This document shows, in pieces, positions 7,944 to 64,000 of a stretch of DNA of 64,000 nucleotides. The stretch is from Cycas panzhihuaensis (Eukaryota; Plantae; Cycadophyta): positions 73,291,741-73,355,740 of the forward strand of contig CM041465.1 of NCBI GenBank assembly GCA_023213395.1, written 5' to 3'. Position 1 is the first letter of the stretch. Each line of letters starts with the position of its first letter. Both the position numbers and the translations under genes were made by a program. A model generated the notes under the pieces. The model searched no databases and was not told where the DNA came from. It saw only the letters and a program-made list of their open reading frames with translations.

Positions 7944-10900
7944 CTTATCTTACTTGGTTGAGTATCCAAACCCCATTCCCAGAAGTCAGGAAATAGGTGC
8001 TTACCTTTCCACTTAATATAAAGTACTTAATCCCATTTTATAGTGTTTCCACCATATAACTGATTAATAGAATATAATATCTTAATTAACCAATCAAATA
8101 AGGCAATATTAAATTACCACTTAACATATTTAAATATGGCTTCTTAATATTGACTTATGAGAAACTGAAAGACAATAAGCATGAGAATACATCACTATGC
8201 AAATCCTCCCTTGAGAATGACTTCATGATGGAGAATGCATCTAAATAATAGTTTGTAATATTTAAATCTATTTAAAACATATGTGCTTTGCCTGAGTTTA
8301 TTATAATCCATATAATGAAAAAACCATGTACTAGATGACGTGGATAATTGGTCACTACAACTCCTAGTTTATTAGGATGTTCTTTATATATATAGTTCAT
8401 CAACATTTTAATTGTGCTTGCCTGGAATGTATCTCAACCAAATAGAATTGATTGGATGCTTCATGAAATACACTTAAATTAGAGTTTTCAACCCTAAAAA
8501 CTAAATTTTGAAGCACAATAATATAAATTTAGAAACCAACAATTGTCAAATAATGAAGAAGCATATAATTGAAAACCTAATCAAATTTCTCCATGAATCT
8601 AAATCTTAAAATGTCTTTAAATCTTGCTAAAATATGAAAATATCAATTCTAAAGCTTGAAAGGTCAAAAATCAGAAATTTAATTGCACATATGTGTAGAC
8701 CTTAAAAAAACACTTTGAATTAAAAAAAGAATTTTTGAAATAAGATATTAAATGATCAAGTTTTAGTGACTTGAAGATTATGTGGGAAATTGAGTAAATT
8801 TGACTATTTTTAATGAGATGCAAAATTGACCTAAATTTTCACTACCAAATCAAAACACAAGTATACTTTATAACTGCTTATTTCAATGGCATCTGAACTA
8901 GGATCTCAAAATGTTGATAAAACTAAAATTATGTGTCCTAGTGAAAAGTTACGCTTAAAAGAGTACAGGTAATTATATGAAATTCTAAACTTTTATTAAA
9001 ATTATGGCATTTGCCCCTTTTCAAAATAACCCTAATCATATCTTAAATTCCATAGGATTGAGGGCTAATGCACAAGGGGCTAATGGTTGAACTTCATAAA
9101 AATTTCTAATTTGGTTTAATCAAACCAAACCATTGGAAAAGATATATATTTAAATAACCAAATTTAAAGAACAACATACCCATGTTTTCAAAAATTAATT
9201 ATTGTTACAAAAGAACTTGATTTAGATACCAAAAATTACTAGATCTCTTGATGAATAATTAAAGGAAGATCATGACAACTCAAAAATCATGTAAACAAGT
9301 TTTTAAAAATGTACTTTTAATGGAGATATTCATTGGTAATATTATGGAGGAGCGTGAGGTTATGGCGCAATGTAAGGACATGTAGCTTTGTCGAGAGCCA
9401 CTAGACCTATGTAGGGCTGCCAATCCACCAATGGGTGCCATAGAAGGTTGTGCACAACAACATGAGCAACGAGAGGATGCCTTGGAGATGTATGAGGGTT
9501 TATGAAGAGTCCATAGGCCAATTAAGATTATCACAGAAGGAGAATAAATTCATATGAGATCCCAACAACTAAGAATAATTAAAAATACTCAGTTAAAGCT
9601 AGCTAAGTAAGAAATAGAGTGCCCAATAAAGAAGAAGAAGGACAAAGCCATGTGTAGAGCTGCCTAAACTGCCTAACACCAACAAAAGGTTTAGGTACAC
9701 ACCAGACAAACTAGCAAAACCTTACAAGGGAAAGATCTACAAAATACACAAAAAATAACTACTTAGTTCTACTATTGTTCTACCTTAATAGTGAACTACT
9801 TGCAAAACCATCTAAGCCTAAAGATTTTAACTAAAAGTGCCTTTTCAATGAATATAAAAAACATGCACATGATGAGCTCTAAATGAATATGAAGCTATAA
9901 TGAAACTATATTTAAAGAAACTAAATTAGTCTACAATACATTCAATTGAGCTGGAAATTAAAGGTGGCTTGTAAATAAGCATTAAACATGCATAAAATAG
10001 GCTTGAAATAAACATGAAATTAACCTCAAATTTGCCACCAAATTAAGAGAATGATATCTAGTATGCACCAAATCGGTACTGAATGGTAATTGGATACTAG
10101 CTTTACAACCTATTAACTTACCTTAAATAACTAAATTGTTGAATTATGATTGAAGCCTATTGAATAAAAACTGAGAGAGATGTACGAAATAAGGCATTGT
10201 AAGGAGATTGTTAGACGGCTACCAATAATCCTAAGAGAGGACTAGGTAAGAGAGAATCCAAGGAGCTAATGTATTTGAATGCTCTTGATGTGTCTACAAA
10301 ATATACCACATGTAATAAGGCAGGAATATACTAAAACAAGTTTAAAAATAAACTAAATAGCTTGAGGAAACCAAACTTTGAATCAAATTAAACATGTACA
10401 TAGATGAAGCTCTTGATATTTTGTCAACTTGTTATGATACCATGTTAGAAAATAGATTTTACTACCATATAAAAATATCATATATAACATTAATACCATG
10501 ATGAATAAACTAAAGTAATAAGGTCATTAGATGTAATAGGATTGTTAATAATTGTTGAAGGTGGTATATGCTCTAATACCACAAAGATAGCCTAGGATCT
10601 CTTAGAGAGGGAATGTACTGGGAGACTAAGATAATTAATACCAAATCAATAACACTAAATGGACAAATAAGTAAGCAAGCATACACTCAAGTATATGAAG
10701 ATAATAGAGATGGAGGAGTAGGAATTGCTTCTATCTCTAAATAATAAGATTAGCTTGTATTTAATTAAGCAAGATAATAATACAATACCTTATTCCCATC
10801 ATAATCTACATGAGAAATGGTCTCAATATATAGAGGAGGGGGAATCTTGGGGGTTATATGTTTGACACTTATCAAACATGTACGCCTTGACCCATGTGCA

Positions 10901-14504: not shown

Positions 14505-17500
14505 TATTAGAAACACTAAATAAGCAGATTGTTAGTGTATACAACAAGCAAAGGAACAAGTACATAGTATAAAGATATATGTGGGAAATCTAGCAGTTAA
14601 AACCCGCCATTGAACATGGATTACATTAATACAAAATGTGCAAATTACAAATGGACTTCAAATCTCTATTTATAGATCTGTAAGTGCCTCAATATCTAAA
14701 TATTAATTACATCCATTAGCCCAAATATTAAATATAAAGTTTACACAAACTATTATTCTATAATTACATTAATTAGGTAACACCGTTTCTAACATCCCCT
14801 CTTAATGTAAATGTGGGGTCTTCAAGTCTTTCCATCGGTCAATCTAACCTTTCTCTTTATTCTTAGAGATAGATCCTCCCTTAAGCATAAGATTACTAAG
14901 ACCCAAGCTTGCATAAATCTTGATGAAGTATTCTTTAGTAAGAGCTTTGATAAACACGTCTGTAAATTGATCTTTACTTAGACAAAGCTCGACATATATC
15001 TTCCCTGATCTGATTAATGCATGGATGTAATATTGTAAAATTTTGATGTGCTTTGTATATGCATGAAACTTTGGATTCTTTAAAGTCGAATAGCACTCTG
15101 ATTATCAATGTGAATAATAGGTGTACTAATTGATGCTCCAAGGCTCTCTAGAAGTCCTTACAACCATACAACTTCCCTTGTACTAACATTTAATCCTTGA
15201 TACTTAGCCTCTATAGAAGACAAAGCCATGATGGATTACTTTTTAGATTACCATAAGACAAACCTATTGCCAATACCAAAAATGTAACCTGTAATCGATT
15301 TTCGATCTTCTGCATCTCTATCCCAATAAGCATCTGTATACCCATGCAAATTTACCTCTCCACCATGAAGGTATTCAAGGCCAAGATTAAGTGTACCCTT
15401 AATATACTTCAAAATCGTCTTTGTTCTACCAAAATGTGGCTCTTGGGGATTTTGCATATAATAAGATACCAATCTAATAACATAAGAAATATCAAGCCTA
15501 GTATAAGTTAAGTAAATCAAAGTTTCTACCAATTGCCAATATAATATTCCATCTACAATTGTCTTATCCATGTTCTTCCAAAGCTTTATACCTTTCACAT
15601 ATAGTATCTTTGCCAGTTTACAATCCTTTATACCAAATCTCTCGAATAGGGATTGGACATACCCCAATTTTAACATCATGATATAAGTATCCATATGCCT
15701 AATCTCAATGCCCAAAAAGTAATGAAAACATCCAAGATTTGTCATATCAAAAGTATGACCCAAATTGGCCTTGGTAGATGTAATAGTATTGTTATAATTA
15801 CCTATAATGATAAGATCATCAATATACAAGACAACAACAACTATTGTAGATCCACTCTTTCAAATATAAAGACTTGGTTCTAATTTTATTGTCACAAAAC
15901 CATCTTCCTTCAATCTAGCATCAATATTTTCATATCAAGGATATGGTCCTTATTTTAGGTCATAAATGGATTTCTTCAAGTGGCACACTAAATTCTCCTA
16001 ATCTTCCTTCATAAAACCAAGAGGTTAGGCCATGTAAATCTCCTCTTTCAAGTCTTCACTTAGGAATGCAGACTTTATGTCAATTTGATGTAATTTCCAA
16101 TCAAATATAGTTGTCAAAGCAAGGATTAATCAGACTATTAGCATCTTAGAGACTGGCGCAAAAGTCTCCTCATAATCAATTCCTTCTTTCTATTTGAAAC
16201 CCTGCACAACAAGTCTTGCCTTATGCTTATTTACTTCTCTATTAGAGAAATACTTTATCTTGTAGACCCACTTACAACTGACTAGGTTCTTAGAGGGAAA
16301 TAAGGGAATCAAATCCTATGTATCATTCCTCATAAGTGAACCATATTCCTCCTCCATTGTAGATCTTCTTTCGCCTCCTTAAATGAAATGGGATTGTTGG
16401 AATCATTGGTGTCCATCACTAAACCCTGATTAGCATGTTGACTTTTCATTCTTCGACTATCCTCTAGATCCTCAACTGTCACACATGAGTCTTCGATGGT
16501 TCTCCTTACTAATAGTGGAACATGAGGTGTAGACCATACTTCTTCTTGCAATGACTCCTTAATATTACTTTCACCAGGTCTTGCTTCTATCTCAACCTAA
16601 ATGCTAGGCTCATGTACGTCTATATTTGTTGAATTATAGCTTGAAAATGGTAGAAGTGAAGGATAAAATGTATCTTCAGATGACCTATCAACATGATACA
16701 TTATAGACTCATCAAACTTAACATCCTGATTAATTAAAATTTTATTTCCTTATGAATCCCAATGTTTGTAAGCCTTACTCTCTTGAGAGTACCCCACAAA
16801 GATGCACTTCAAAGACTTGCAATCCAACTTCTTTTGATTTTCATCTAGGATGTATGCATAAGAAATGCATCCAAATACCTTAAAATAGTTAATGGAAGGT
16901 TTCTAACTAGTCCAACATTCTTCAAGGGTTATGCCATGAATAACCTTAGTAAGGATCCTATTCAAAATGTAAATGGTTCACTATAGCTTTTGCCCAAAAC
17001 TTGGGAGATAAATTCTTACCATGTACGATGCATGTCGCCATCTCCATCATGATATGGTTCTTCCTTTCGGTTATACCATTTTGTTGTGGGGTCTACAGGA
17101 CAATCAACTCCTGTTTGATACCATGAGTAAGGAAAATTTGATTTAGGGCATTATTATTACACTCTTTTACATTATTACTTCTTAAAATATTTATTTTCAT
17201 ACCACATCTATTCTCAACACAAGCTTTCCATTCACAAAATCTATCAAATACATTAAACTTATTCTTAAAAAAGAATACCTAGGTTTTTCTTCTGAATTCA
17301 TCTACAAACACAAGCACATAACGAGTTTCTAAAATGGAAGGATTGGGTAATGGACCTATCAAATCTGTATAGATAAGCTCCAACTTCTCTTTTGCCCTCT
17401 ATACACTATCTTTAGCAAAAGGATAATGATGGTGTTTTCCACATACACATCCCTCACAAGTACCATTTGAGCATTGAATATGAGGTAATCCTATCACCAT

Positions 17501-20654: not shown

Positions 20655-22269
20655 GAATGTACTAATCATGAGATATTAGAGGCAAGGTTTTAACTTTTCT
20701 CAGGCCTCTCCAATAAAGATTTTTAAGTAATTTTTAAAGTATTAAGTGGATTAAAAATAAACTACTTATTAAAGATGATGATGCTACCTTACAACTTGCT
20801 TAAAAACCTAATATAAAATGCTTCTAAATAGAGTTTCTTGAGTGCTTAAAAGAACACTTTAAGTGTAACAAGAAAATGACTAAAAACTTAAAAATAGTAC
20901 AAGTGCCAAATGAGGGGATATTCCTTTCTTGTAATGCTTCAGTAGGTTCCTTCTTTAGGTGTAAAATCAACTATTTAATGCATAATTTAATCATTTGTAC
21001 CATGTCATACACCACCACGAAGATGTTAAGACTTAAAAATAGTCCTAATGTGCACAAAAAAAGTGATTTTTAGCCCTTTTTATGACTAAGATTAAGAGGA
21101 TACCTCATAGAGAGCCTTAAAATCACTTGTACAATGTGAAGTTCTTATGAAAATATATAAAAATAAGTCAAATCATTAATTTTTAAGTCAAAGAACACAC
21201 ACATAAATTTTTTTAAGCGTTAATTAAATTCAAAGGGAAAGAAAAAACATAACAAAAAAATAAAGTGATTTGCTTTGAAACTAATGAAATAACATAGAAA
21301 TCACTTTTAAAAAATGAAACTATAAAAAAGTGACATCGATTAAAATAGAAATATTCTTTGGATATACTAAAGTTTATAACCTAAAGTTGTGTTTATAATA
21401 TTAGGAAAATGAAATATCTTTCAAAAAGGTCAAACCTATGGTAGCGCAACAAGTGGAAATCCAAATAGACAGTCGAGAATAACAATCGAAAGAGGTGACG
21501 AATCCTTGGAATGCCAATTGAATGATGATCCTCAATAGGAGACGATGATTCTGGAGTAGTTTGAGATAATTTGATGGAGAAACAAGAAAACATGAATCAT
21601 TCTTGTCTTTTGAAGGGTGCATGGACAACATGATGAAAACACTCTTACAGAGTTAAATTTCTCACTTAAAATTACTGTGGCTAAGGCAAGACGCATGTAG
21701 TGAGCCTTAGAAAATGATCTAGTAAGTCTAGAGACTGAGATAAGCTTCTCCACCTTTTTTTCTTTAGTAAATCTACCTAGCATTATAAGGAACTGCCTAA
21801 CTTTAGGTATAAACAAGGTAGAGTAAATTTTGATGCTAGTAGAGGGTAAGTCGACTCTGTGGAGTGAATCTTCTCAAAATTATCCTTATGAATATGAAGG
21901 AAGGAGAGTTGAAAGAATAAACAAAGCACTTTTATTAACCTTGGAGGCCAATATTATAGAACAACTTGCATAATGGACACCAAAACAACATCAAAGGAGT
22001 ACCAAAGTACTTTCTCTTAAGAAAAGGAAATAATAATCAGTACCAATTACAGGTAATCTCTAACCCTATAATAGACAAAAGAGAGTCTCTCTTTAATAAT
22101 CCTATTGGCAACCCTAACGACCTTACATATCATTGAAGGGCTTAGTGGCCCATGCACAAAACTTAATAATTAATATCAACACTTAACCCTTAATAGTTTC
22201 TCCATATTAGTGACTTTTCTACTTAAGAAGATGGGGTTAAGTTATAGGTCCCCTGCTCTAAGATATTAA

Positions 22270-26520: not shown

Positions 26521-28052
26521 CATATTCAATATTCCTATACTGTTGGAATTGGACTAATTTATTTGAGTGACTAGTTCTGAGAAATTTACCTTTAAAGGAA
26601 GGTTGGCTAATTCAACTTTCATCTCTTATCAGAAAGCTTTAAGCTTAGTTTCTAGTGAAGAGATCCTTTCTCTTTGTGATTATGCCATCAAAAATATAGA
26701 ATAGGCTTTAAAGAAGTAGGACTTAGTAGAAAAAAGGGGAAATGCATGAAATAGGAAATAACAAGAAAGAACAAATTTTAAAGAAATAGGGAATGCCTTA
26801 AGAAAAAAATAGGATACAAAAGGGATAAAAGGAGAAGGGACTTGAGGTGTTTATAGCTTGTTGACCTCAAAATTTAAGGAACAAAATCACCTAATGCACT
26901 TAGACGAACGTGAAGAGGTCATCAAAATAGGATATGTGAGTTATCGGGGTAAACTTTAGTAGTAAGGCCCACGTGCAGACTATAAAAATTGACTCAGTGT
27001 AACTTGATTATTGTAATGTGATGATCGAAATAAAATGTATGAATTTTAACCATAATATTTTTGGCTATGAACTTTTTAAATTTTTTTTTGTAGTGAGTTC
27101 AATAGCTCATATCATTTTTTATTCTAATAAGGATTGATGAAGTTATGGCCTTCTCTTTGTAGGTCTATATTTTCAGTGATAGATGTACAATAACAATTCA
27201 ACAGACTTAGTTTCTCTATGCAAGTAGGACTTCAAAGTAGAGGAGACCTATCAGACTCTAATACTAGGAGTTCTTAGCTATATAGGCCTTACGATAATTT
27301 TCTCTATCGTTATTGTAGCTTGACCCAATATATTAGGGCACTACCTATAGAAGAAAGATCATTTCTGTAAGATCTATAACTATGTAGAAGTGTTCGTGTA
27401 GGGTAGCTTCTAGCTACTAACTACTGGCCTGTGCAACACAAAAGGCAAATAACCAAAGGTTTGCCCATTCTAAGATGGGTAGGGAGCCTATCAGGGTCCT
27501 CATATATACCTGAGGGTACGTAGAGGCTTGATTCTATAAGGGAGTTTTGTCTAAACCTTGGTTCAATAAACTTAACTAAAGTCCTTCATGCAAGGGCAGA
27601 AAAGCCATAATATTCTTAGCTTAGAGTAATAGATCCTCATGATATTTATAAACCTCTAGTACAAGGTCTCTACCTAACTAATTTAGGCAGTTACCAAGCA
27701 AAGTTATCTACCCAAAAGAGGGAGGGAGGGAGCAAAAAATGGTAGATACTAAGCAGCATAATCTATCGTTGAACAAAAAATTAAAATGACTGAAAGCTGA
27801 AACTAAAAAAATATATATATATAGTACAAGAGAAGGGTTATGAGTGTAACTAAAGAAAAAAAAACAATTCCCTCTTTTTCAACTTCTGAATACCTCAATA
27901 GGGTTATAAAACCTTGTTCTGATACTATTTGGAGTGTATCTTCCTAAAATCATCCTTGTGAGTTTGAAGGAGAAAGAGTTGAAAGATGAAACAAAGCACT
28001 TTTATTAACTCTGGAATCCAATATTATAGAATATGTAACAAACCGTTACACC

Positions 28053-28056
28053 AAAA
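28053..28056 (-). terminator. Candidate Pol III T4 terminator in the 3' LTR of the TRIM
   Basis: TTTT occurs once per LTR; the internal domain has no run of three or more T on the minus strand. Confidence 0.4.
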
Positions 28057-28094
28057 CCCCGAGGTGTTAGTGAAGACCACCCAAGTGTGTAACA

Positions 28095-28108
28095 ATACCT
28101 CCCCCACA
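28095..28108 (-). promoter_or_regulatory. Polypurine tract of the TRIM
   Basis: Minus strand GTGGGGGAGGTAT immediately before the 3' LTR. Confidence 0.85.
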
Positions 28109-28238
28109 TGGCATCGACGTCCCGACGACCCACACTTGGTGACCCACACTCGATAATTTCGCGCCCCATCGGGCCCTGGACGAAGACTACTATGCCGGCG
28201 TTCTATCGAGGTCGTCCCCTCCAAGGTCGTCCCCTCCG

Positions 28239-28293
28239 GGACTCGAACCCGTGACCTTGGCTCTGATACCACTTGTAACAAACCGTTACACCA
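28239..28293 (-). promoter_or_regulatory. Putative RNA polymerase III type-2 promoter (A box 28283-28293, B box 28239-28249)
   Basis: A box TGGTGTAACGG and B box GGTTCGAGTCC are separated by 33 nt, as in tRNA genes. The B box is preceded by AGGTC (tRNA variable-loop-like) and sits in a CGGG/CCCG stem. Confidence 0.75.
28258..28271 (-). promoter_or_regulatory. PBS complementary to the 3' end of plant initiator tRNA-Met
   Basis: TGGTATCAGAGCCA, 2 nt downstream of the 5' LTR end. Confidence 0.95.
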
Positions 28294-29824
28294 AAACCCC
28301 GAGGTGTTAGTGAAGACCACCCAAGTGTGTAACAGAATAGCTCATACAATAGACAGCAAAAGAGCACAAAAGTACTTTTCCTTAAGAAAAGGAAATAATA
28401 ATTAGTATCTATTATAAGTAATCTCTAGCCTCTAAAGAGACAAAAGAGGGTCTCTCTTTAGCAATCCTATTAATGGCCCTAATGGTCTTACATATCATTA
28501 GTGGCCCTAATGACCTTATATATCATTAGAGGGCTTAGCAGCCTACGCATAAAACTTAATAGTTAACATCAATACTTAACCCTTGATGGTTTCTCCATAT
28601 TAGTGCCTCTTCTGGTTAAGAAGATGGGATTATGTTACACTTTGAGTAAGAGACTAGAAAAGATTCTATAGATTTACTATGCTACAAACCTACAAAATAT
28701 TTTTTCTATTCAAAAAAATGAAAAAAAACATTAATTTTTATGTATTTTCTCTGTTACATATACAAAATACACCTCAAAAATTTTCTAAAAAATAAATTTG
28801 TTGATTTTTAACCCTTAATATTATATCTGAGATAGAAAAGATAGAGTAAACAAAGCAAAAAACAACCTTAGATCACTTTCAAAGTGTGAAGGTCATCATT
28901 AAGGGTTTGGTGTACTTCCTCAAGCCTACAAATAGTAAATACTCTTCTCCACTATACTTTGAAACCAAATGTTGAAGGTGGAATATGCTTTGATACCATG
29001 AAAACAACATAAGATCTCTTAGAGAGGGAGTGTGCTAAGAGATTAAGAAAATTAACATCAAATTAATAGCACTAAATGGACAAATAAGTAAGCAAATATA
29101 AACTCAAGCATATGAAGATAATAGAGATGGAAGAGTAAGAATTGTTCCTATCTCTAAATAATAATATTAACTGGTATTCAAATGAGAAACATAACAATAC
29201 AATATCTTGCTTTCATTGTACTCTACATGAGAAATGATCTCAATATATAGAGAAGAAGGAGGAATCTTAATAGGTTATATATTTGACACTTGTTAAACAT
29301 GTACGTATTGACCCATATGTATTTACATCTGTAAAAGTGTATGAGAGGTACATTGACACTCAAGTTATAACATCATGTTACTAAAATGAATGTGGGTGTG
29401 TAGTTTATCACATTAGGTAGTAAAGCACCTTTACATAAAGTACATGATATTATAATATAAAGTACATGAATTAACATTTAAATATAAAGGTCTAACAACA
29501 ACTATATTAAGAAATAAATAAATAAACAAGTTAAATCATGAGACATAGATTTATAGTGGGAAAACCAAGTAGGGAAAAACTACTCTCTTTAGTATTAGCC
29601 TATTTATTAATGAACTTGAACTTAATTACATATTTCTTAAATCTCTCTTCAGTGATCTCTTACCCTTAATCCTTTTAGATCTTGGGTACTCATCTCTCCA
29701 CTTAATATAAAGTGCTTGATATCTTTTTATAGAGTTTCCACAACATAATTGACTAATAAGATATCACCTCTTCATTAATCAATCATATAAGGTAATATTA
29801 TATTATCACTTAACATATTCTAAT

Positions 29825-36042: not shown

Positions 36043-38680
36043 TGTTAGCATCACCATTTAATATTAAGCCATTTATTAATATTAATATGTGGTATAATTA
36101 TGTGACTAGCGAAAATGTGTGAGTTATTCTGAGAGTCACAACCTTTAAGGGTTGACACCTCTTCGGGGATTATAAATATTTTAGAGTCCATTATATACTC
36201 AAACACTTTAAAATTAATGTAATCAAGAGATCTTTTGTGGTGGGTTTTTTAGCCAAAGGTTTTTTCATGTATATCCTATGTACTGTGCAATTGGTCTCTA
36301 TTTATTCTATTTGATTGTTGTGTATGGTAAAGATTCTATAGTGTGTAAATATGTATGCATTCATTTATGTTTATTAATATGATATTAAAGCTGTAAGGTC
36401 CTATATAGTTAGGATTGGGTGGAGCAATAAGATCATTGGTTGCCATGTAAAACCAACAGAACTTAAGTTTCTTAAAGATTTTCTCTTCTCTAATAACTTG
36501 CAAAGCAAGCATAGTGGTTAATGGTATATGAGGAGGTGAAATTCACTTATTAACAAGGTTAATAGACTGTTTGGGGTCAAAAATCAAATTTGGAATCTCT
36601 TTAGACTAAGTTGGGTTCATTTTGAAGTCATGTAGAGCTGGTTGTGCATGTTGGGTATTGTATAAAGCTAGTTGGGCATGATCTAAAGGTGATTTAATAG
36701 TGTTGGGTATCATTGGACATTATTCAAGTAAGTTGGGCATTGTTTTAAATACATTCAAAATTATTGGGCATTAAAATCAATATTTTATATTTAAAAAATC
36801 ATTACTTCAGTTATAGGTGAGATTGCATCCATGTAAAATAGTTTTATATACATGAAAAGGTTATTAGGAAACATTTAAGGCCATTTGAAGGATTTTTTTT
36901 ATTTTGTGTTGATTGGGGCTAGAGTTGGACAACTTTATGAAGCTTGTGACCTTGTTTTCTCTTCATTCCAAGTGTATGCTACTTGAAAAAGGTCTAATAC
37001 CTACTTGTGTATGTCAGTAATAATATTTAATTATATATTTTAAGCCAAAAGAGGCATTTTGTAAGCAGTAGAAAGATTGTTTTCCCTTGCATAGGTCGCA
37101 ACCCTCATTGAATAGTCACATCCTTTATATCACATGTTTTTAAGTCATAATCACATTTCAAGATGAGCTTCATATATCTTAAGGTTTCTAAACATTAATC
37201 TATCTTAAATATTTGATATTGTGTATTGTATAGCATATGGGTTAAGTCAAAAGGCATATAGGAGTTTTGGATAGCTACCAACCAAGGAATATATTTCCTA
37301 GGAATATTCCTATATAAATTAAAGTTATAACCTTTGTAAAACCATTATGAAAGTAATTTTGAGTCAAATACTTCATGATTTAAAAGATTTCAAAGAGCAT
37401 ATCTGTTAAATTTAGCATCGATTCTGACTTACAAATCCTTTCAACCACTATTGTATTGAAAATTCCAATTTGTTGAAGCATTTTTTGAGGATTCTAAATA
37501 TTTTTAAAAGCTTTTTAAGCAATTGGAGAACCTTTTAAGTCCTACTATTATTGGGTTGATTGTTTGTGAGTAGTTTTTTAGTTTGCATAACTATTAAATT
37601 GAGTGCCCTAGCATATACTCTTGTGAAAAAGGAAAACATCATGAAGTTAGTGATGTCCAAGGGACTATAAGTCTAGTAATTTGGTATTATTGACTCTAAT
37701 TTAAAGCTCGTTTCTTAAGAATGGATAAATTAATGCCTAAAGTCATCTTTAATGGCAATAACTTCAGTGAGTCGAAGGCCAATATGGAGTTAGTACTCAT
37801 GCTAAACAAACTCTAGCACTTACAAAGGCGAAAGCGGGCACACTTCTAATAGATCATAAAGAATATGTTCATCTTCAGGAGAAGTAGTTCATGGTGGTTA
37901 GATTGTTGAAATTATCACTAGCTCCAAACCATAAAGTGATGCTTTATAACCTTGGGTAATTAGATAAAATTTAGGCCAAGTTGTGTGATACATTTGAAAA
38001 GAAAAAGAAAAATAGGCATTTCGCTTTGATGTTGGAGCTTTTCAATTCTAAGATGGAAGATGAGATCAACATAAGTGCTTATCTAAACAAAGTTGCTAAT
38101 TTGAAGAATGAGCTGGAAGACTTAAAACCAAACTCAATTAATGATAAGTTATTGTTTGTGGTGGCTATGTCAAAATTGCCAGCTACATTTTTAACTTTCC
38201 AAACCATCTATAGAAGAGATAAAGTAATAGAGGGTGAAATGTTTGATGGTATTAAAAATATCATTCTAGTTGCAAATGCCAAGCTAAAACATCATGGTAT
38301 GTTTGGTGGTTCTGCTTTGAATAAGGCCTTAGTCATGAAGATAAAAAGAAAAGAGATTATTCAAGAAGAAAGGTCCACACAGAGGATAGGGCATTAATCT
38401 CGAGAAAAGAAGAAATTCATTAGAAAATGTAACTACTACAAAAAGGAAGGGCACTGAGAGAAGAACTACTAATTGAAAAGATGGGACAAACATAAAGCTA
38501 GCCAAGATGATGAGGGGAAGAATGTTGCAGCACATTGTGTCAGAGTTACAACCTTGTCAACCAAGTCAAGTCAAAGAGATTATTAGATTTTAGACTCTCG
38601 AGGTCATAAGTATATCTCTTTTTAGAAGCAGGAATTTGATGCATTGAGTGCAGTCAATGCCAAAGTGTCGTTGTTTATTG
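36043..38680 (+). mobile_element. Truncated Copia relative of element D (5' LTR, leader, gag, start of protease)
   Basis: ORF 37981-38397 (CDTFEKKKKNRHFALMLELFN) is homologous to D gag 18393-18617, with the gag start at ~37721. An LTR-like region at ~36043-36379 resembles the reverse complement of the D LTR and is followed by a degenerate PBS. Confidence 0.75.
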
Positions 38681-47963: not shown

Positions 47964-50900
47964 TGTTAAGAGGTAATGTTTAATATATTCAGATCTAAGT
48001 TATGTCTTAATGTCATTAATGTAATAGTCTTAAATATTATATAATGGTTTATAAATATATTATCTAAGGTCTAATAGAGATGTTCAGTAATGTCATTAAG
48101 CATGTTTATATGTAATACCTAAATTAGTTGGTCAAATAGTTGTTCTTTTGGTTAGAGGACTTAATGACAAGTCCAAATATAAACGTGTATACATTCTCTT
48201 TCAATAATGATTCAACACAATGGAGATTTGATAACCATGTTTAATATGGTATCAGAGCCGATTGATACATTGGGAGAGTTTGATTTATTGCAAGTCTATT
48301 GTTAATAAAATTTTTAAAGGTTACTAGTTTTAGTTGTGAAGAAGAGACAAGCTAGTGATGAAAAACTGCCCATATGGATGTAAAGCACCTTAGCTTTCAT
48401 AGATTGATGTGTAATAGGTTTTGAACCCTGGAAAGTGGAGTTTGGTTGCGTGGATTGTGTTCTTGCATTCGAACAGTTGTGAAGACTATCTATAGTCTTC
48501 ACAAGTGGGTTTAGACTTGGAAGCCCCAGTCTGAAAAATGAGCTTCTGAATACAAAATTTTGAGAATTCTGTCTAATGGAATGTTGAATAATCATCTTTG
48601 GGTGACAACAATACGGTTACAAGACAAGATAAAGAGTTGAAAAAATTAAAAATCTTATGTTGAATAATCATCTTTGGGTGACAACAATATGGTTACAAGA
48701 CAAGATAAAGAGTTGAAAAAACTAAAAATCTTGGTAAGCAAGGACCAGTGTGGTAAAGGCTAGGGCATGAAGAGCTCTGTTCTGCCTCCTCCTCTCAGTC
48801 CCTCCATGGCTTTAACCTGCAGCGTCTTTCGTAGGCCCCAGAATGCACACAAAAAGTCAAGGGTGTGTAGTTGGCGAATGTATGGCCTCATTTTGCAAGG
48901 CAGTAGAGGGAGAAGCCCTTCATCTTTGCATACAACAAATTTTAGCTAGCCATGGTGACAATTTTGTGGTTTTAGAAGTGTTCTCACTGAGGTTGAAAGG
49001 CTTTCGAGTGGTGAATGAGGGATCGTTGTTCAGTGGTTTGCAGGTTTTGTTTGGCGTACCGTGAACTCTTCTCTTCTTCTTGATCTCAGATAACAAGACA
49101 GAAGACGTTGGGCCCTATTGAGGTGGCTTTCCTCGTATTCATTTGGAGGTCGCAGTGACTGTGGACTTATGAAGATGTAGGGTTACAACCATTATGGTGC
49201 AGTTGTGGCTTTGAGAGGTTGCACCATCTTTCTTATGTTTTTTCTAATATTTAGCCAATGTAGTGTGATGTTTCACATAGGCGTGGAGTTTGGCGGCCGA
49301 TTCTTTCTTCAAACCACATACGATGTCCTTCTGTTGGCTGAAGCTTCAGCTTCATGCATGTGGATTTAGCCATATGCGAGATTAATCTTGTGAATACGTG
49401 GAGGTAGGGTTTTGGCTTCTTTTCTATGGTTGTTGTCAGTTGTCAGCTTACATGTCTGTATCTGTATGCAGAGTATTTGTAACGAAAGACAGCAGGCGCC
49501 TTCGTTGCCTGTTCCGTGAAAGAAGTGCTTTTTGGCAACTGCATATTTATTCCTGCGGTTGGATGTGTTAGCAATTTATTGTTAAGTACGGTCTGTTTTG
49601 ACCTCAGAACTAGATTTGGAGCTTATTCCTAGGGGTTTTGAGGCAGGTGTTGTCCTAACAGAGTTCGTTTGGCAACCTTCTCCCTGGGGGCAAATGGTGC
49701 TTGGATTTTGATCCCTAAATAGATGTTTAGTGTCTGGAAGGTGTGATTAAGTGATAATTGGTAAATCTAAATGTTCAGGTTATTGGTGAAGGAATTTTTG
49801 GAGATGCGTGGAGCTCTTATTCTGACTGATCAAACTCAAGCAAGGTGGATATCCAGAGTGTGAAACAAAGCCAGACCGACGAAGACAGAAAGTCTAGAGG
49901 GAAGGAAGAAGAACAAGATAAATTAACAGGAAGATAAAATGTTCGTATAGCTGCAAATGCAGAGATAAAGGTATTTTTGAAGGCAATATCATTTCTCCAA
50001 AGTTATGAAATAAATTTCCACGAATGCGAGATTTCTTAAAGCAAATTTAATATTTTACAAAGTTCTTTTTAGATTTAACAAAATTGAAATTTAATTTGGG
50101 GTCTAGTAGCACCTTAGAGTATCAGTCCATGGTTATATGCAACATCAACATGGCCAATCACCAATTTATCAAAGGGGTTAATCTTCTGATAATATAAGTT
50201 GCTCTTCATACAGAGGTGTTCGCACATTTTCTCCTGTATCTCTCTATCTAGGCATCTGTTCTCTAAACAGAATGAGGCGTTGCATCATATTTCAAAGATA
50301 AATGTGTTGGTATATAATTTGAAGTATTTTCTTATTGATTTGACATATTTGTTTTAGGTTAAAGTAAGTGCATCATGAAGTTGAGTGATATTATTACTTT
50401 TATATTAAATTTTTTTTTTTTTTTGGATAACCTATTGTAACATAGCCTTGTTCAAATATGTTGGAATTAATTTTAAAATTTAAAGAATCAAAATAAAATG
50501 TATATTTATGTACAAAAGGCTACAAGAAATAATTGATGATCTTGCATCGATTAATGAAGAAGTGGAAGAAAATTTTAAGAAGAAGAACAGAATTGTCATT
50601 GATATGATGCCTACAGTTTTTCATGTACTTTAAAATATTGACTCAACTAAAGAGGCTTGGAATTTGTTGAGAGAAGAATTTGAATAGAGCCTTGAAGAAG
50701 TGCAGAAAACTGCCAAAAAAGCAAAGAACTAGAAGAAGAAGTTGAAGAGGAAAGCAAAGAGGGAGAATACAAATAATCAACTTGATTTTGGTAAGGATAA
50801 AGTTCTTATAGACTTATTTGATGTTCTTAAAGAAGTTGAAACGATAAGTGAACTTGTAAGTAAACATAAGGATTATGAATCCTTGATGCACATTTCTGTA

Positions 50901-61000: not shown

Positions 61001-64000
61001 TAATGTTAGAAGAAGATATTGTTCTTTGACGGTTCATGATAACTTATTCTTTTAGCAACACTCCTTTTAGGGTATTAAAGTCCATGGTAATAAAGTCATT
61101 ATATAACCAAGAAATAAAATTATTGTACATATAAGGGAGAACATTTACAACATTGAAAACAAGATCATGATTGGAAAGAGGAGTTTCAAGATTGATAAGT
61201 TGGTTCATAATGGACATAACTTCAATCATATATGAGGGAATGGAGCTAATAAAGAGTATGGCATATAAGCATGCTTTTAGCATAATAGCTTTAGAGTCAT
61301 CTTTCTGTTCATAAATGAAACATATAATTTTCCAAGCTTCATGAGAGTTATTTGTTATCTCAGTGTTTTGATCCACATTATCTTCCACAACTAAGTGAAG
61401 GAAGGATAGAGCTATATTATTTTTAGCTTTAAAGGTAGTAAAGACAATGGGGTCTAAAGGAATCTCATTATTTAGGTTGTTTAGGTCAGGTGTGGAACCA
61501 AGTTTGGTTATGTCTCTAGATACACAAGACAAAAAATCATTCATAATTAAGAGGTGTTTGACTTGTTTCTTCCAAGTTAAAAAGTTATTGTTCTCTGATT
61601 ATTTAATAACATTTGAAATTAACATTTGTGTTGTCATTATGAACTATCAGCCTAATTGGCTATTAAGCTAGAATGCTAAAATTTCACTATTTCCAAAGAA
61701 GCCCTTGATTGCTATTCTGTTTAGTGGTATCTTCCTACAGATGGTAATTTAGAGACTCTATATACATTAATATATGCGTAAGTTAAGCTCAATATACCTG
61801 GGTACATGAGCATAGAAGGATCGGTTGCCTCCTTAACACTATAAATCTATTTATACCAGATTTATATCAATCGATAAATCAAGTGAAGGGCTAAAACTAA
61901 GACACTAACCTCTCCAGGTCTAGCCTCGTCTTCAAACACTAAAAGAATGGGTCTAGACCCCAATCCATTATTCAATACACCTTATAACAAGTTGTCATTT
62001 GGATTGCTTATCTAAATGAATGTAACTCACGTGTGTGTGAGTGATTGCTTTAGGGGTCCTAACCATTCTCCTTACATGATTAGTAGTTTGAACATTTCAA
62101 TTCAGAGATTATCTTATTTAATGTTTTAAGTTCAAATTCATGTTTAAAGTGGTCTTATTTATAGACATGAATATAAATTTTTAATGATTTTAAAGTAGGA
62201 GTCTTAATTAAAAAAATAACAAATAAATATTGAAAGTGCAAGGTAAGACTTTAGAGTGCTTAGTAAGGAAGGGGTCATTGCTAAAAGGTAAAAAAATAAT
62301 CCTTCTTCAAACAAAAAAAAAACACCTGTAACAACAAAGCACCACATACCATTAGCTTAAAAAATGAGTGAAAAATACTTCTCAAATGATAAAAGGTCCT
62401 TTATAATGTGCTTACAACTGAAAAATACCTTAAACATATATTTAAAGTTTTTAACTAATTAAAAAAATACTTTAGAAACATAAAATAAGGGGAAATAAAG
62501 GGGCTTATTTAGTCTAAAATATAGCCAAAATATGTCAAATGATAATTCATGTTGAAGTACTCTGAGTCTATATTCTAACAGTTTAGATGGCTAAAAAAAC
62601 AAACAGTCGGTTGAGAAGATATAAGCAAAATAGTACAACATGTTCCTTATGAACGAAAAACTAAATTGTGAGGCTTTTAATCCCTTTCATAGTGTAGCCC
62701 TTGGCTATGTTTAGGGTACATATGACCAACTGCTTATCCCAAGGATGCTTCACAGACTTGAAAACAAATTCCAATTAGATTAAATATGTCAAAAATGTTT
62801 GTAAAAGAATATATACTGTGATCGAAAATTTAAAGAGTCACATGACCTTTAATGCTTAGCCTATAAGTGATAAACTTTTTGCAAAATTGGTGAAATCTCG
62901 ATCGAATCTCCAAAGAATCTTCTAATCTTGCTTGGGCAAGCTAGGATGGCTTTACCTGATATGTTGGGCTCAAAAGCGACATGGAAAGCAAAGGGTGTCA
63001 CTTGACGAAAGCTTTAAAGTAGAGTCAGACTTTATGCAACAATGTAGAGCCGAGGTAGATCACATAGGGACTGTTGGTGACATAAACTTCACACAAGAAA
63101 TGGAGAGAACTCATCACGATCTTCATAGTTGAATGATCATCCACGGTGGTTATATCTTCTATGGTTGAGACGCCTTCTAACTGTGGACAGGTGTTGCTCC
63201 AATCTGATGTAGATGCACCCTCTTCACTCAGCTACGAACAACTCCATGGAAATTGTAGAAGCCCATTAGGGAGGCCGCTTTTAGTGCATACACCACGAAG
63301 GTAGGATGCATAGAAGTAGAGATCCTCGGCCAAGTAGATGGAGTAGTGGGAGTGATGTGTGCTATGCAGTTTGAGCATGAACTTTATAGGCAACCATGCA
63401 ACAAAGGAGAAGGTTCACAATTTATGGAAGTAGGGGCTATGCATTTCGAGAGGTCGCATACAACCACAAACAAGTAGGTTCATGTGGCGGACAACACCAA
63501 AATAAAGGGAATAATACTCAATGGAGACAAATAAGATTTAAACATATTTTTGTTTGTTTTGGATGTCCACACAGAACAAGAGCAAATATGGTCTAATAAT
63601 TTTTTTAAATGAAGTTAAATAGCATGCATCATTTTGAACAACTCTTGCAAACATGGTTCTATTTTTCACAATGTAATGGAATGATGTTCTTCACTTGATG
63701 AATGATCAACCTGTAGCTAATTAGTATTTGTTGAAGAAAGTAAGAGAGTCTCACTCTGATACCAAATGATAGAATTAGAATTAATATTACACCTAGAAAC
63801 AAACGTCGGGATCTTTATTCTCAGTATTTAATAGATATAAACTTATCAAATATTTCATGAACGCATTCAAATGAACATAATATATAAATGATTATAAATT
63901 GGATCTAAACTAGTGATAGATCAAATTAATTGATAGTTGATATAGAACTTTGGCAGAGTTTTGATTGTCACCAAATATACAACCTTATCTAGTTGTTAAG
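58053..64000 (-). mobile_element. Ty1/Copia element K with RT deleted; 5' LTR runs off the right edge
   Basis: 3' LTR 58053-58508 matches the sequence starting at 63767 (tgat(t/a)gaattagaattaat...), PBS ctctgatacca at 63754-63764, PPT after 58508. Confidence 0.9.
58503..61640 (-). pseudogene. Copia gag-PR-INT remnant joined to the RNase H C-terminus
   Basis: ORFs 61044-61544 (gag), 60213-60578 (protease LDFGATRHM) and 58503-58730 (ARTKHIGDHHYF...EDQVTNIFTKAL). Integrase remnant at ~59200-59900. Confidence 0.88.

Follow-up and report, generated by a model that had tools for sequence, protein, structure and literature searches.

A very young miniature retrotransposon of Cycas panzhihuaensis carries tRNA-type A and B boxes split across its LTR–PBS junction, a candidate Pol III promoter

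The locus described here raises the question of how an LTR retrotransposon of only 301 bp, with LTRs of 61 bp, could be transcribed, and whether boxes resembling those of a tRNA gene, which lie on either side of its primer binding site (PBS), could serve as its promoter. The window, by which we mean the whole stretch of 64 kb (64,000 nt) that was analyzed, holds this element on the minus strand at 28334→28034, and all of the element's features given below are read on that strand. Its 5′ LTR (28274–28334), which contains neither a TATA nor a CAA motif, is 100% identical to its 3′ LTR (28034–28094), both LTRs have TG..CA ends, and the same 5 nt, TATTC, are read at both ends of the element as target-site duplications (TSDs; 5′, 28335–28339; 3′, 28029–28033, directly after the 3′ LTR). 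An AG spacer (28272–28273) leads from the end of the 5′ LTR to a 14-nt PBS, TGGTATCAGAGCCA (28258–28271), which is complementary to the 3′ end of plant initiator tRNA-Met (tRNA-iMet), while a polypurine tract (PPT), GTGGGGGAGG (28098–28107), stands 3 nt ahead of the 3′ LTR. An earlier interpretation made from the letters alone (hereafter, the sequence-only reading) had proposed an LTR/PBS junction at this place, and these identical LTRs, TSDs, PBS, and PPT show that the junction is real.

With its direct TG..CA repeats, its length below 1 kb, its lack of coding sequence, and its PBS, PPT, and TSDs, the element belongs to the TRIMs. Its sole ORF, of 98 aa, is a read-through of the GC-rich body (the GC content of the TRIM is 55–61%), and a homologue search with this ORF, which was also meant to find further copies, gave 0 matches; a second copy of the TRIM was likewise absent from the 64-kb window. 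The repeat that hosts the TRIM is another retroelement on the same strand. We found a paralogous empty site on the plus strand at 21890–22040, an older copy of the repeat that does not have the insertion, shows 77–83% identity to both flanks of the element, and retains a single target copy (GAACA on the plus strand) at the junction near 21960. The observed/expected CpG ratio was 0.98 in the element compared with 0.13 in its flanks, which, together with the identical LTRs, shows that the TRIM is very young. From this, we concluded that it is a very young, non-autonomous, iMet-primed element with 5-bp TSDs that inserted into an older, decayed repeat.

The sequence-only reading had also described 73 nt of the minus strand, 28300→28228, as being laid out like a tRNA gene, and the letters are exactly those that it gave. 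When these 73 nt are numbered as a tRNA (n = 28301 − position), every part falls in exact register. The U5-side end of the LTR holds an A-box-like sequence, TGGTGTAACGG (28283–28293), which fits TRGYNNARNGG (T8 R9 G10 Y11 .. A14 R15 Y16 G18 G19); the 17 positions of the anticodon-arm slot are taken up by the final base of the LTR, the AG spacer, and the PBS; AGGTC (28253–28257) occupies the variable-loop positions 44–48; and a T-arm-like hairpin, ACGGG-TTCGAGT-CCCGG (28236–28252), contains a perfect consensus B box, GGTTCGAGTCC (28249–28239). We measured 33 nt between the A box (28293–28283) and the B box, as had been stated, and 44 nt from start to start, which is the canonical 8→52 register of tRNA genes. 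The TGGT/GCCA hairpin that had been placed in the anticodon-arm position fared less well: four pairs are possible (one of them G-T) around a 6-nt loop, but the hairpin is missing from the predicted fold. A tandem duplication of a 15-nt unit (GGAGGGGACGACCT ×2; 28209–28237) begins within the 3′ strand of the T-stem and spans the position of the 3′ acceptor strand. The B-box sequence, GGTTCGANTCC, has a single occurrence in the 64-kb window and none in 100 shuffles, the A-box pattern has a background of about 2e-4 per strand-nt in the window, and the joint chance of both boxes in this register, calculated from the background rates of the window, is about 1e-5 per element.

We then considered whether the boxes are a property of the family. 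The TRIM family, which is very abundant, was present in 2613 contigs of a single DNA sequencing run, under two other species labels, and in two runs guessed to be RNA, where it appeared as contigs without starts, ends, or strand (the ends being those of a repeat graph); among the listed runs containing the stretch, none is on record as RNA. Among the listed family variants, changes in the box region were confined to positions 16, 51, 59, and 62, none of which is invariant. The sole A-box change listed, C16>T, is compatible with the consensus, the changes at 51, 59, and 62 are the only ones listed for the B box and T-arm, and none of the listed variants was altered at T8, G10, A14, G18/G19, G53, T54, T55, C56, R57, A58, or C61. 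In diverged relatives, which part from the TRIM sequence right after the PBS, GGTTCAAATCC or a near match to it begins within 1 nt of the same offset, and the pairing of the T-stem is not retained; in some relatives, C56 is broken (GGTTTAAATCC, GGTTTAATTCT). In relatives with longer LTRs, the part in common with the TRIM is limited to the final 43 nt of the LTR (loose end at 28316), as would be expected if the upstream part of the LTR were dispensable, and their loose-end sequences are absent from the 64-kb window. The module formed by the LTR end and PBS is also common to other, more abundant families.

For comparison with other LTR–PBS junctions, we scanned metagenomes with a 20-mer spanning the LTR end and PBS, which yielded 77 plant-like loci, none of them from the TRIM family, and reduced these to 54 non-identical plant junctions that share the LTR end and PBS of the TRIM. 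None of these control junctions has an A box or a B box (0/54 for either), which indicates that the boxes are not generic to iMet-primed LTR junctions. Many of the Copia-like control junctions extend the PBS by an AGGTT-like sequence. ARAGORN found no plant tRNA-iMet in the 77 loci, and a scan of viral contigs and prokaryotic genomes for the PBS followed by N4–14 and a B box gave 0 matches. Taken together, the variants, relatives, and controls support the view that the split A/B layout is family-wide, rather than being generic to iMet-primed LTR junctions.

Our main reading, to which we give a probability of roughly 0.45, is that this TRIM family may be transcribed by Pol III from a two-part internal promoter of the tRNA type (type 2), with A and B boxes at tRNA spacing that could explain the transcription of so small an element. 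TFIIIC would bind the 5′ LTR-leader unit through the A box, which lies within the final third of the LTR, and through the B box, in the T-arm-like sequence 8 nt past the PBS, with TFIIIB subsequently covering the short U3 and adjoining flank. The predicted start is a few bases upstream of 28300; the polymerase would have to pass a weak T4 run, GGGGTTTTGG (28293–28296), whose last T is the first base of the A box, and would terminate at the copy of this run in the 3′ LTR (28056–28053), giving an RNA of ~250 nt whose terminal repeat (R) measures roughly 5–18 nt. These two T4s are the only runs of T≥4 on the sense strand of the TRIM, and we infer that the first of them could act as a leaky terminator for Pol III, one that would set the 3′ edge of R. 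The absence of further T4 runs from the 236 nt between them is not significant, as 65% of shuffles likewise had none. Gag, reverse transcriptase (RT), and integrase would come from a Copia-type partner.

A promoter downstream of the start would allow U3 to be reduced to next to nothing and would account for an LTR of 61 bp. The LTR has no TATA and leaves room for a U3 of only about 25–30 nt, with which an upstream Pol II promoter is hard to reconcile. The 3′ LTR carries a copy of the A box (28053–28043), and no B box was seen on reading its downstream flank; with a single B box in each element, neither the 3′ LTR nor a solo LTR would possess a full promoter. Some observations count against the Pol III reading. 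The first T4 lies only about 5–15 nt past the presumed start and needs read-through, the LTR lacks the TATA and CAA motifs that precede plant tDNAs, which as a rule have an A/T-rich region upstream together with CAA motifs at the start (PMC11700998), although most of the 50 nt upstream would come from the flank, and some relatives have the broken C56 noted above.

Among the alternatives, it is rather unlikely, to our judgment, that Pol II makes the template RNA of what would be an ordinary TRIM, either by reading through from neighboring genes or transposons or by starting at a weak LTR initiator, and that the boxes are a fossil with no promoter role. Such a fossil could stem from a captured tRNA or SINE fragment, or from an extension of the PBS into the complement of the tRNA-iMet T-arm that has since drifted, and the AGGTT-like extensions at many Copia-like control junctions speak for this alternative. 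There are TRIMs and SMARTs whose LTRs are very short and for which Pol III has not been invoked (CcaRetroS9, PMC4717578; SMART, PMC3281118), read-through has been discussed as an option for SMART (PMC3281118), and both the nesting of our TRIM in a retroelement of the same strand and the loss of C56 in some relatives are in keeping with this alternative. Drift, however, is very unlikely to have produced a perfect B box, a good A box, the exact register, and AGGTC together, and a B-box-like motif stays at a fixed offset in the diverged relatives despite changing neighbors. The T loop, TTCGAGT, moreover has the sense of a tRNA and fits TTCRANT, whereas read-through of the primer would have left an antisense copy. 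The antisense loop of tRNA-iMet would read TTTCGAT.

We regard it as improbable that the T-arm-like hairpin serves reverse transcription or packaging instead, the A-box match being part of a U5 hairpin. The T-arm-like hairpin would then give tRNA-iMet a second contact of the kind made by the Ty1 boxes or by the primer activation signal of HIV-1, or it would be a tRNA-mimicking handle for the Gag or RT of the partner. Its 3′ half, CGAGTCCCGG, could presumably pair with the 5′ strand of the T-stem and the loop of tRNA-iMet once the PBS has opened the stem. This explanation also draws on the perfect 6-bp hairpin at the LTR end, TGTAAC/GTTACA, which overlaps the A box, on the occurrence of the LTR-end and PBS module in other, more abundant families, and on a complementarity of the PBS that reaches 17/18 nt if one A is bulged, as judged from a published tRNA 3′ end, AAACCTGGCTCTGATACCA, a plant small RNA reported to map to copia elements (PMC5846777). 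Against it, the motif is found in none of the 54 junctions with the same LTR end and PBS, which means that iMet priming does not generally require it; constancy is seen at the positions that TFIIIC reads rather than at those that would pair with the tRNA, and the pairing of the stem is lost in diverged relatives.

It is very unlikely that the resemblance to a tRNA arose by chance and was picked out in a search for tRNA-like patterns: although GC-rich motifs are likelier in an element this rich in GC, and the 73 nt as a whole score nothing in tRNA models, the joint probability near 1e-5 and the recurrence of the motif at the same offset in diverged relatives argue otherwise. ARAGORN reported 0 tRNA genes in the stretch, and a covariance-model scan with Rfam gave no tRNA, 5S, or ribozyme, either at the gathering score or at E ≤ 10, where the sole match was one of 15 nt to the T-arm of the tRNA/tmRNA clan model, outside the LTR. 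Folding of the 73 nt gave no cloverleaf (z = −1.59), and the strands at the acceptor position, GGGGTTT and AGGGGAC, are unpaired. In the absence of a tRNA-like fold, the resemblance is confined to the boxes, the variable loop, and the register, in agreement with the earlier statement that this is not a tRNA. We rejected a tRNA gene on these negative results and on the lack of both a paired acceptor stem and an anticodon arm. For all its A and B boxes in tRNA register, T-arm, and variable loop, the idea of a tRNA gene, pseudogene, or tRNA-derived SINE that merely looks repeat-flanked can practically be dismissed, given these same results, the full LTR–PBS–PPT–LTR structure with its 5-bp TSD and empty paralogous site, and the lack of an A-rich or simple-repeat tail. 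A retrozyme was rejected as well, since Rfam gave no hammerhead match and the CTGATGA core is absent.

Returning to transcription by Pol III, precedent for TRIMs driven in this way, and their size range, is provided by Cassandra, Helenus, and Ajax ("TRIMp3," PMC10886601). As the sequence-only reading had stated, the boxes of Cassandra and Helenus lie inside the LTR (Kojima, 2024, PMC10886601; Kalendar, 2020, PMC7215508). The TRIMp3 class is defined by Pol III promoter elements of the small-RNA-gene type together with transcription by Pol III (Kojima, 2024), and, judged by sequence, our element has the former in its consensus A and B boxes in canonical register. Helenus elements resemble it in having A and B boxes of the tRNA type, through which Pol III is presumably recruited, without a functional tRNA, and in being of similar size (311–1263 bp), but they hold a whole tRNA-like unit with both boxes within each LTR. 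In our TRIM, the A box alone is in the LTR, and the B box is internal and past the PBS; the PBS sits in the anticodon-arm slot, and the LTR, at 61 bp, is half as long as the 120-bp LTR of the sole plant Helenus, which comes from Selaginella. There are no reports of Helenus from seed plants. The element was therefore not assigned to Helenus, its B box lying outside the LTR and its LTR showing no recognizable tRNA/SINE2 similarity by ARAGORN or Rfam.

Cassandra is likewise a plant TRIM with the same tRNA-iMet PBS, TGGTATCAGAGC, and has an internal Pol III promoter and a T-run terminator, said to yield an RNA with an 18-bp terminal repeat; in fern Cassandra, the PBS is only 8 nt from the 5S unit. 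Cassandra, however, has a type 1 (5S) promoter whose boxes, A and C, both lie within the LTR, and is 565–860 bp long. We did not place the element in Cassandra, as the Cassandra query pattern was absent from both strands of the element and of the whole window, and Rfam gave no 5S match. In size, the TRIM belongs to the same class as SMART/FRetro129 (292 bp, 85-bp LTRs) and CcaRetroS9 (233 bp, 52-bp LTRs; PMC4717578), which are also non-coding and likely Copia-mobilized. SMART, compared here by its description alone, is known from grasses only and has a TATA box (TATAAAA) in its LTR (PMC3281118), which ours does not, and neither PMC3281118 nor PMC4717578 mentions tRNA-like boxes or Pol III for SMART or CcaRetroS9, respectively. 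A SINE2 shares the type 2 internal promoter, the length of a few hundred bases, the lack of coding sequence, and the need for a partner's reverse transcriptase; it has, however, no LTRs, PBS, or PPT, uses LINE machinery, and makes variable TSDs, whereas our TRIM has the full LTR toolkit and a 5-bp TSD.

The sequence-only reading had suggested a distinct class of TRIM. We found no description in the literature of a TRIM with A and B boxes split in this manner, nor any of the element's motifs in the supplement of Gao (2016); the concept of a Pol III-driven TRIM already exists, so that the split-box TRIM is a new variant and not a new kind. We tentatively propose, at somewhat less than even odds, that the element represents an undescribed Pol III LTR retrotransposon of seed plants, in which the promoter would be assembled only at the 5′ junction, T4 would keep R minimal, LTRs of 61 bp would suffice, and 3′ and solo LTRs would be left with no full promoter.

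If the boxes work, an LTR retrotransposon can shed nearly all of its U3 by using a promoter downstream of the start, and such a promoter can be split, so as to fire only at a complete 5′ junction. Such elements, being small, numerous, and recently active, make good markers, and they can mislead the annotation of tRNAs and SINEs. If the proposal is true, it would extend tRNA-type Pol III-driven TRIMs, reported among plants so far only from Selaginella, to the seed plants, and would add abundant tRNA-like Pol III/TFIIIC sites to a large plant genome.

The minus strand from 28334 to 28034 forms a complete miniature LTR retrotransposon (TRIM) of 301 bp, with two 100% identical 61-bp LTRs (28334–28274 and 28094–28034, minus strand) ending in TG..CA, and with the pentamer TATTC (minus strand) as a target-site duplication at both element ends. 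A 2-nt AG spacer separates the 5′ LTR from a 14-nt primer-binding site (PBS), TGGTATCAGAGCCA (28271–28258, minus strand), and a polypurine tract, GTGGGGGAGG (28107–28098, minus strand), lies 3 nt ahead of the 3′ LTR. The PBS is exactly complementary to the 3′ end of plant initiator tRNA-Met, which is reported as a small RNA, AAACCTGGCTCTGATACCA, that maps to copia elements (PMC5846777). Nearly the whole element is spanned by an open frame of 98 codons (28024–28320, minus strand), for which a search of 5.8 billion clustered proteins gave no homologue and which most likely reflects only the GC-rich, stop-poor composition of the sequence.

Across the LTR-PBS junction, a stretch of 73 nt (28300–28228, minus strand) had been described as a tRNA-shaped Pol III promoter, and the window sequence matched that transcription exactly. 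Numbering the stretch as a tRNA (n = 28301 − position), we found that the A box, TGGTGTAACGG, begins at T8 (28293, minus strand) and fits the consensus TRGYNNARNGG as T8 R9 G10 Y11 N N A14 R15 Y16 G G. The final base of the LTR, the 2-nt AG and the 14-nt PBS together occupy the 17-nt anticodon-arm slot (positions 27–43); AGGTC follows at positions 44–48, and positions 49–65 read ACGGG-TTCGAGT-CCCGG, which includes a perfect B box, GGTTCGAGTCC (28249–28239, minus strand). The reported 33-nt gap between the boxes was borne out (A-to-B start offset, 44 nt), as were the non-pairing acceptor strands (GGGGTTT and AGGGGAC) and the conclusion that this is not a tRNA: ARAGORN called no tRNA gene in the stretch, the Rfam covariance-model check gave no match at the gathering score (at E ≤ 10, a 15-nt T-arm alone, 7 bits), and the predicted fold of the 73 nt contained no cloverleaf, its stability not exceeding that of shuffled sequences (z = −1.59). 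Two tandem copies of 15 nt (GGAGGGGACGACCT and one further base; 28209–28237, minus strand) start within the T-arm-like hairpin, in its 3′ strand, and span the would-be acceptor 3′ strand.

As a control, we scanned the metagenome with a 20-mer comprising the LTR end and PBS, GTTACAAGTGGTATCAGAGC, a query that covers neither box. This recovered 77 loci, whose LTR-PBS junctions, all from other LTR retrotransposons, comprised 54 non-identical sequences. In none of the 54 did the final 51 nt of the LTR contain an A box, and the 45 nt past the PBS never contained a B box, either by the full consensus with one mismatch allowed or by the minimal form GTTCRANNC. The boxes were likewise missing from all ten other PBS-like sites of the window, and are therefore a specific property of this TRIM family and not of initiator-tRNA-primed junctions generally.

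An older repeat copy at ~21854–22244 (plus strand) aligns with both TRIM flanks at 77–83% identity and lacks the TRIM, with ~26 nt versus 321 nt at the TRIM locus and a single GAACA where that locus has a duplicated GAATA (plus strand); it is a paralogous empty site. Read contigs under two species labels likewise skip ~340–400 nt across the insertion. The element is also a GC island (55–61% GC; surroundings, 32%), with a CpG observed/expected ratio of 0.98 versus 0.13 in 4 kb of flanks. The identical LTRs, the structural hallmarks, the empty site and these contrasts with the flanks mark the TRIM as having inserted very recently into DNA that is old, decayed and eroded by methylation. Two decayed LTR/PBS junctions in the window, TGGTATCAAAGC and TGGTATTAGAGC (28987–28998 and 10570–10581, both minus strand), belong to one older family, with similar flanks (~78% identity over 530 bp). 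Since the TRIM lies ~650 bp downstream of the first of these on the same strand, it is nested in that old element's leader or internal region. Two tandem copies of a 28-nt unit, 86% identical (28469–28524, plus strand), sit in the flank, ~135 bp from the TRIM and outside it. Another exact initiator-tRNA PBS (48247–48258, plus strand), after ..TTTAATA, is part of a different element and has no box-like motifs downstream. Open-reading-frame fragments of Copia-type reverse transcriptase (RVT_2) and Copia gag (Retrotran_gag_2) at 15248–15829 (minus strand), 37981–38397 (plus strand) and 61044–61544 (minus strand), none intact, are remnants of possible partner lineages.

Matching public sequencing runs to 27934–28434 at 80% likeness yielded 2613 contigs in one DNA run (likely the source species), 226 in a run of 111 Mb labelled as another species, and 19 and 25 in two small runs guessed to be RNA. 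Depth fell to background precisely at the LTR ends. The final 43 LTR nucleotides and the PBS were covered severalfold more deeply than the internal region, and loose ends at 28316 show this LTR-end/PBS module to be shared by relatives whose upstream LTR part is different and longer. In the 'organism I' run, a ~50-nt module (28257–28307; LTR end and PBS, with a 3-nt insertion after 28280) was ~100 times deeper than the remaining element and ran into unrelated sequence on both sides, which indicates that a different family, either far more abundant or more highly expressed, also contains it. At a threshold of 5% or more, the variants listed for the box region fell at 28285 (C16>T in the A box, permitted by Y16), 28250 (position 51), 28242 (position 59, N in the B-box consensus) and 28239 (position 62, where the window copy's C is the minority and the majority T gives a G-U pair); none of those listed touched T8, G10, A14, the A-box GG, G53 through A58 or C61. 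Relatives departing just past the PBS read, on the element strand, ..ACCTAGGTTCAAATCCCATGG.., ..TCAAGGTTCAAATCCTGCG.., ..TCAAGGTTTAAATCCCGTG.. and ..TGTGGGTTTAATTCT.., and in all four a B-box-like motif begins at 28249 or 28250 (two exact GGTTCRANTCC, two with C56->T). A B-box-like motif at a set distance past the PBS therefore persists while the surroundings change; a constrained site looks like this, but so could a shared ancestor in slow decay.

Taking the structure, the motifs with their register and specificity, and the abundance and youth of the family as established, our preferred reading, held tentatively at a probability of about 0.45, is a split type 2 Pol III promoter. TFIIIC would contact the A box in U5 as well as the B box past the PBS, and transcription would start in the LTR, upstream of 28300. 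A TTTT run at 28296–28293 would act as a weak terminator: the polymerase would pass it at the 5′ end and stop at its copy in the 3′ LTR (28056–28053). The 3′ LTR and solo LTRs would be silent. The product would be a ~250-nt RNA with a very short terminal repeat (R), comparable to the 18-bp R of Cassandra (PMC10886601), from which reverse transcription primed by the initiator tRNA would rebuild full LTRs in the usual way. A weak point is that the TTTT run lies very near the presumed start; further such runs are absent from the presumed transcript, but their scarcity is not significant. The LTR also has neither a CAA nor a TATA motif, which counts against a split promoter, as many plant tRNA genes have such motifs upstream (PMC11700998).

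The leading alternative, less likely than not, is that transcription is by Pol II or read-through and the boxes are a fossil. TRIMs just as small have been described with no Pol III claim attached (PMC4717578, PMC3281118), and PBS extensions such as AGGTT were common among the control junctions, but the T loop has the sense of the tRNA, which primer read-through cannot yield. Improbable, if plausible by analogy with Ty1 and HIV-1, is a T-arm mimic serving priming or packaging; this relies on what we take to be the tRNA sequence, and the lack of the motif in all 54 related junctions counts against it. Chance resemblance is very improbable. The sequence GGTTCGANTCC occurred once in the window and in 0 of 100 dinucleotide shuffles, and 4 times in 423 kb of plant-like metagenome contigs (both strands), a rate that gives ~1.4e-3 for a single strand over 301 nt, the element's length. 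For the A-box pattern the window background is 2e-4 per strand-nt, so that a match lying at most a few bases out of tRNA register has a chance of ~1e-3; jointly, both boxes come to ~1e-5 per element, somewhat higher given its GC content. A tRNA gene or SINE is excluded by the LTR structure and deserves almost no weight.

With a split Pol III promoter, the element would work as a TRIMp3 (TRIM with a Pol III promoter) in Kojima's sense, yet it lacks what defines each of the named groups. In Helenus the tRNA-like unit lies inside the LTR, whereas here the B box is outside it; the 5S boxes A and C of Cassandra and the hammerhead ribozymes of retrozymes are absent; and the TATA box described for SMART LTRs is missing. 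Full-text literature, covering few subscription journals and not Repbase, contained no description of a Pol III promoter split across the LTR-PBS junction, which is no proof of novelty; within full text of similarly few subscription journals, the term TRIMp3 in its retrotransposon sense appeared in Kojima 2024 only. The split box layout is real and specific to this TRIM family, confirming the original observation. Judged from sequence, the promoter interpretation appears coherent and attractive, and it would account for the lack of TATA, the tiny U3, the 3′ 43 nt of the LTR common to relatives, the size of the element and the success of the family.
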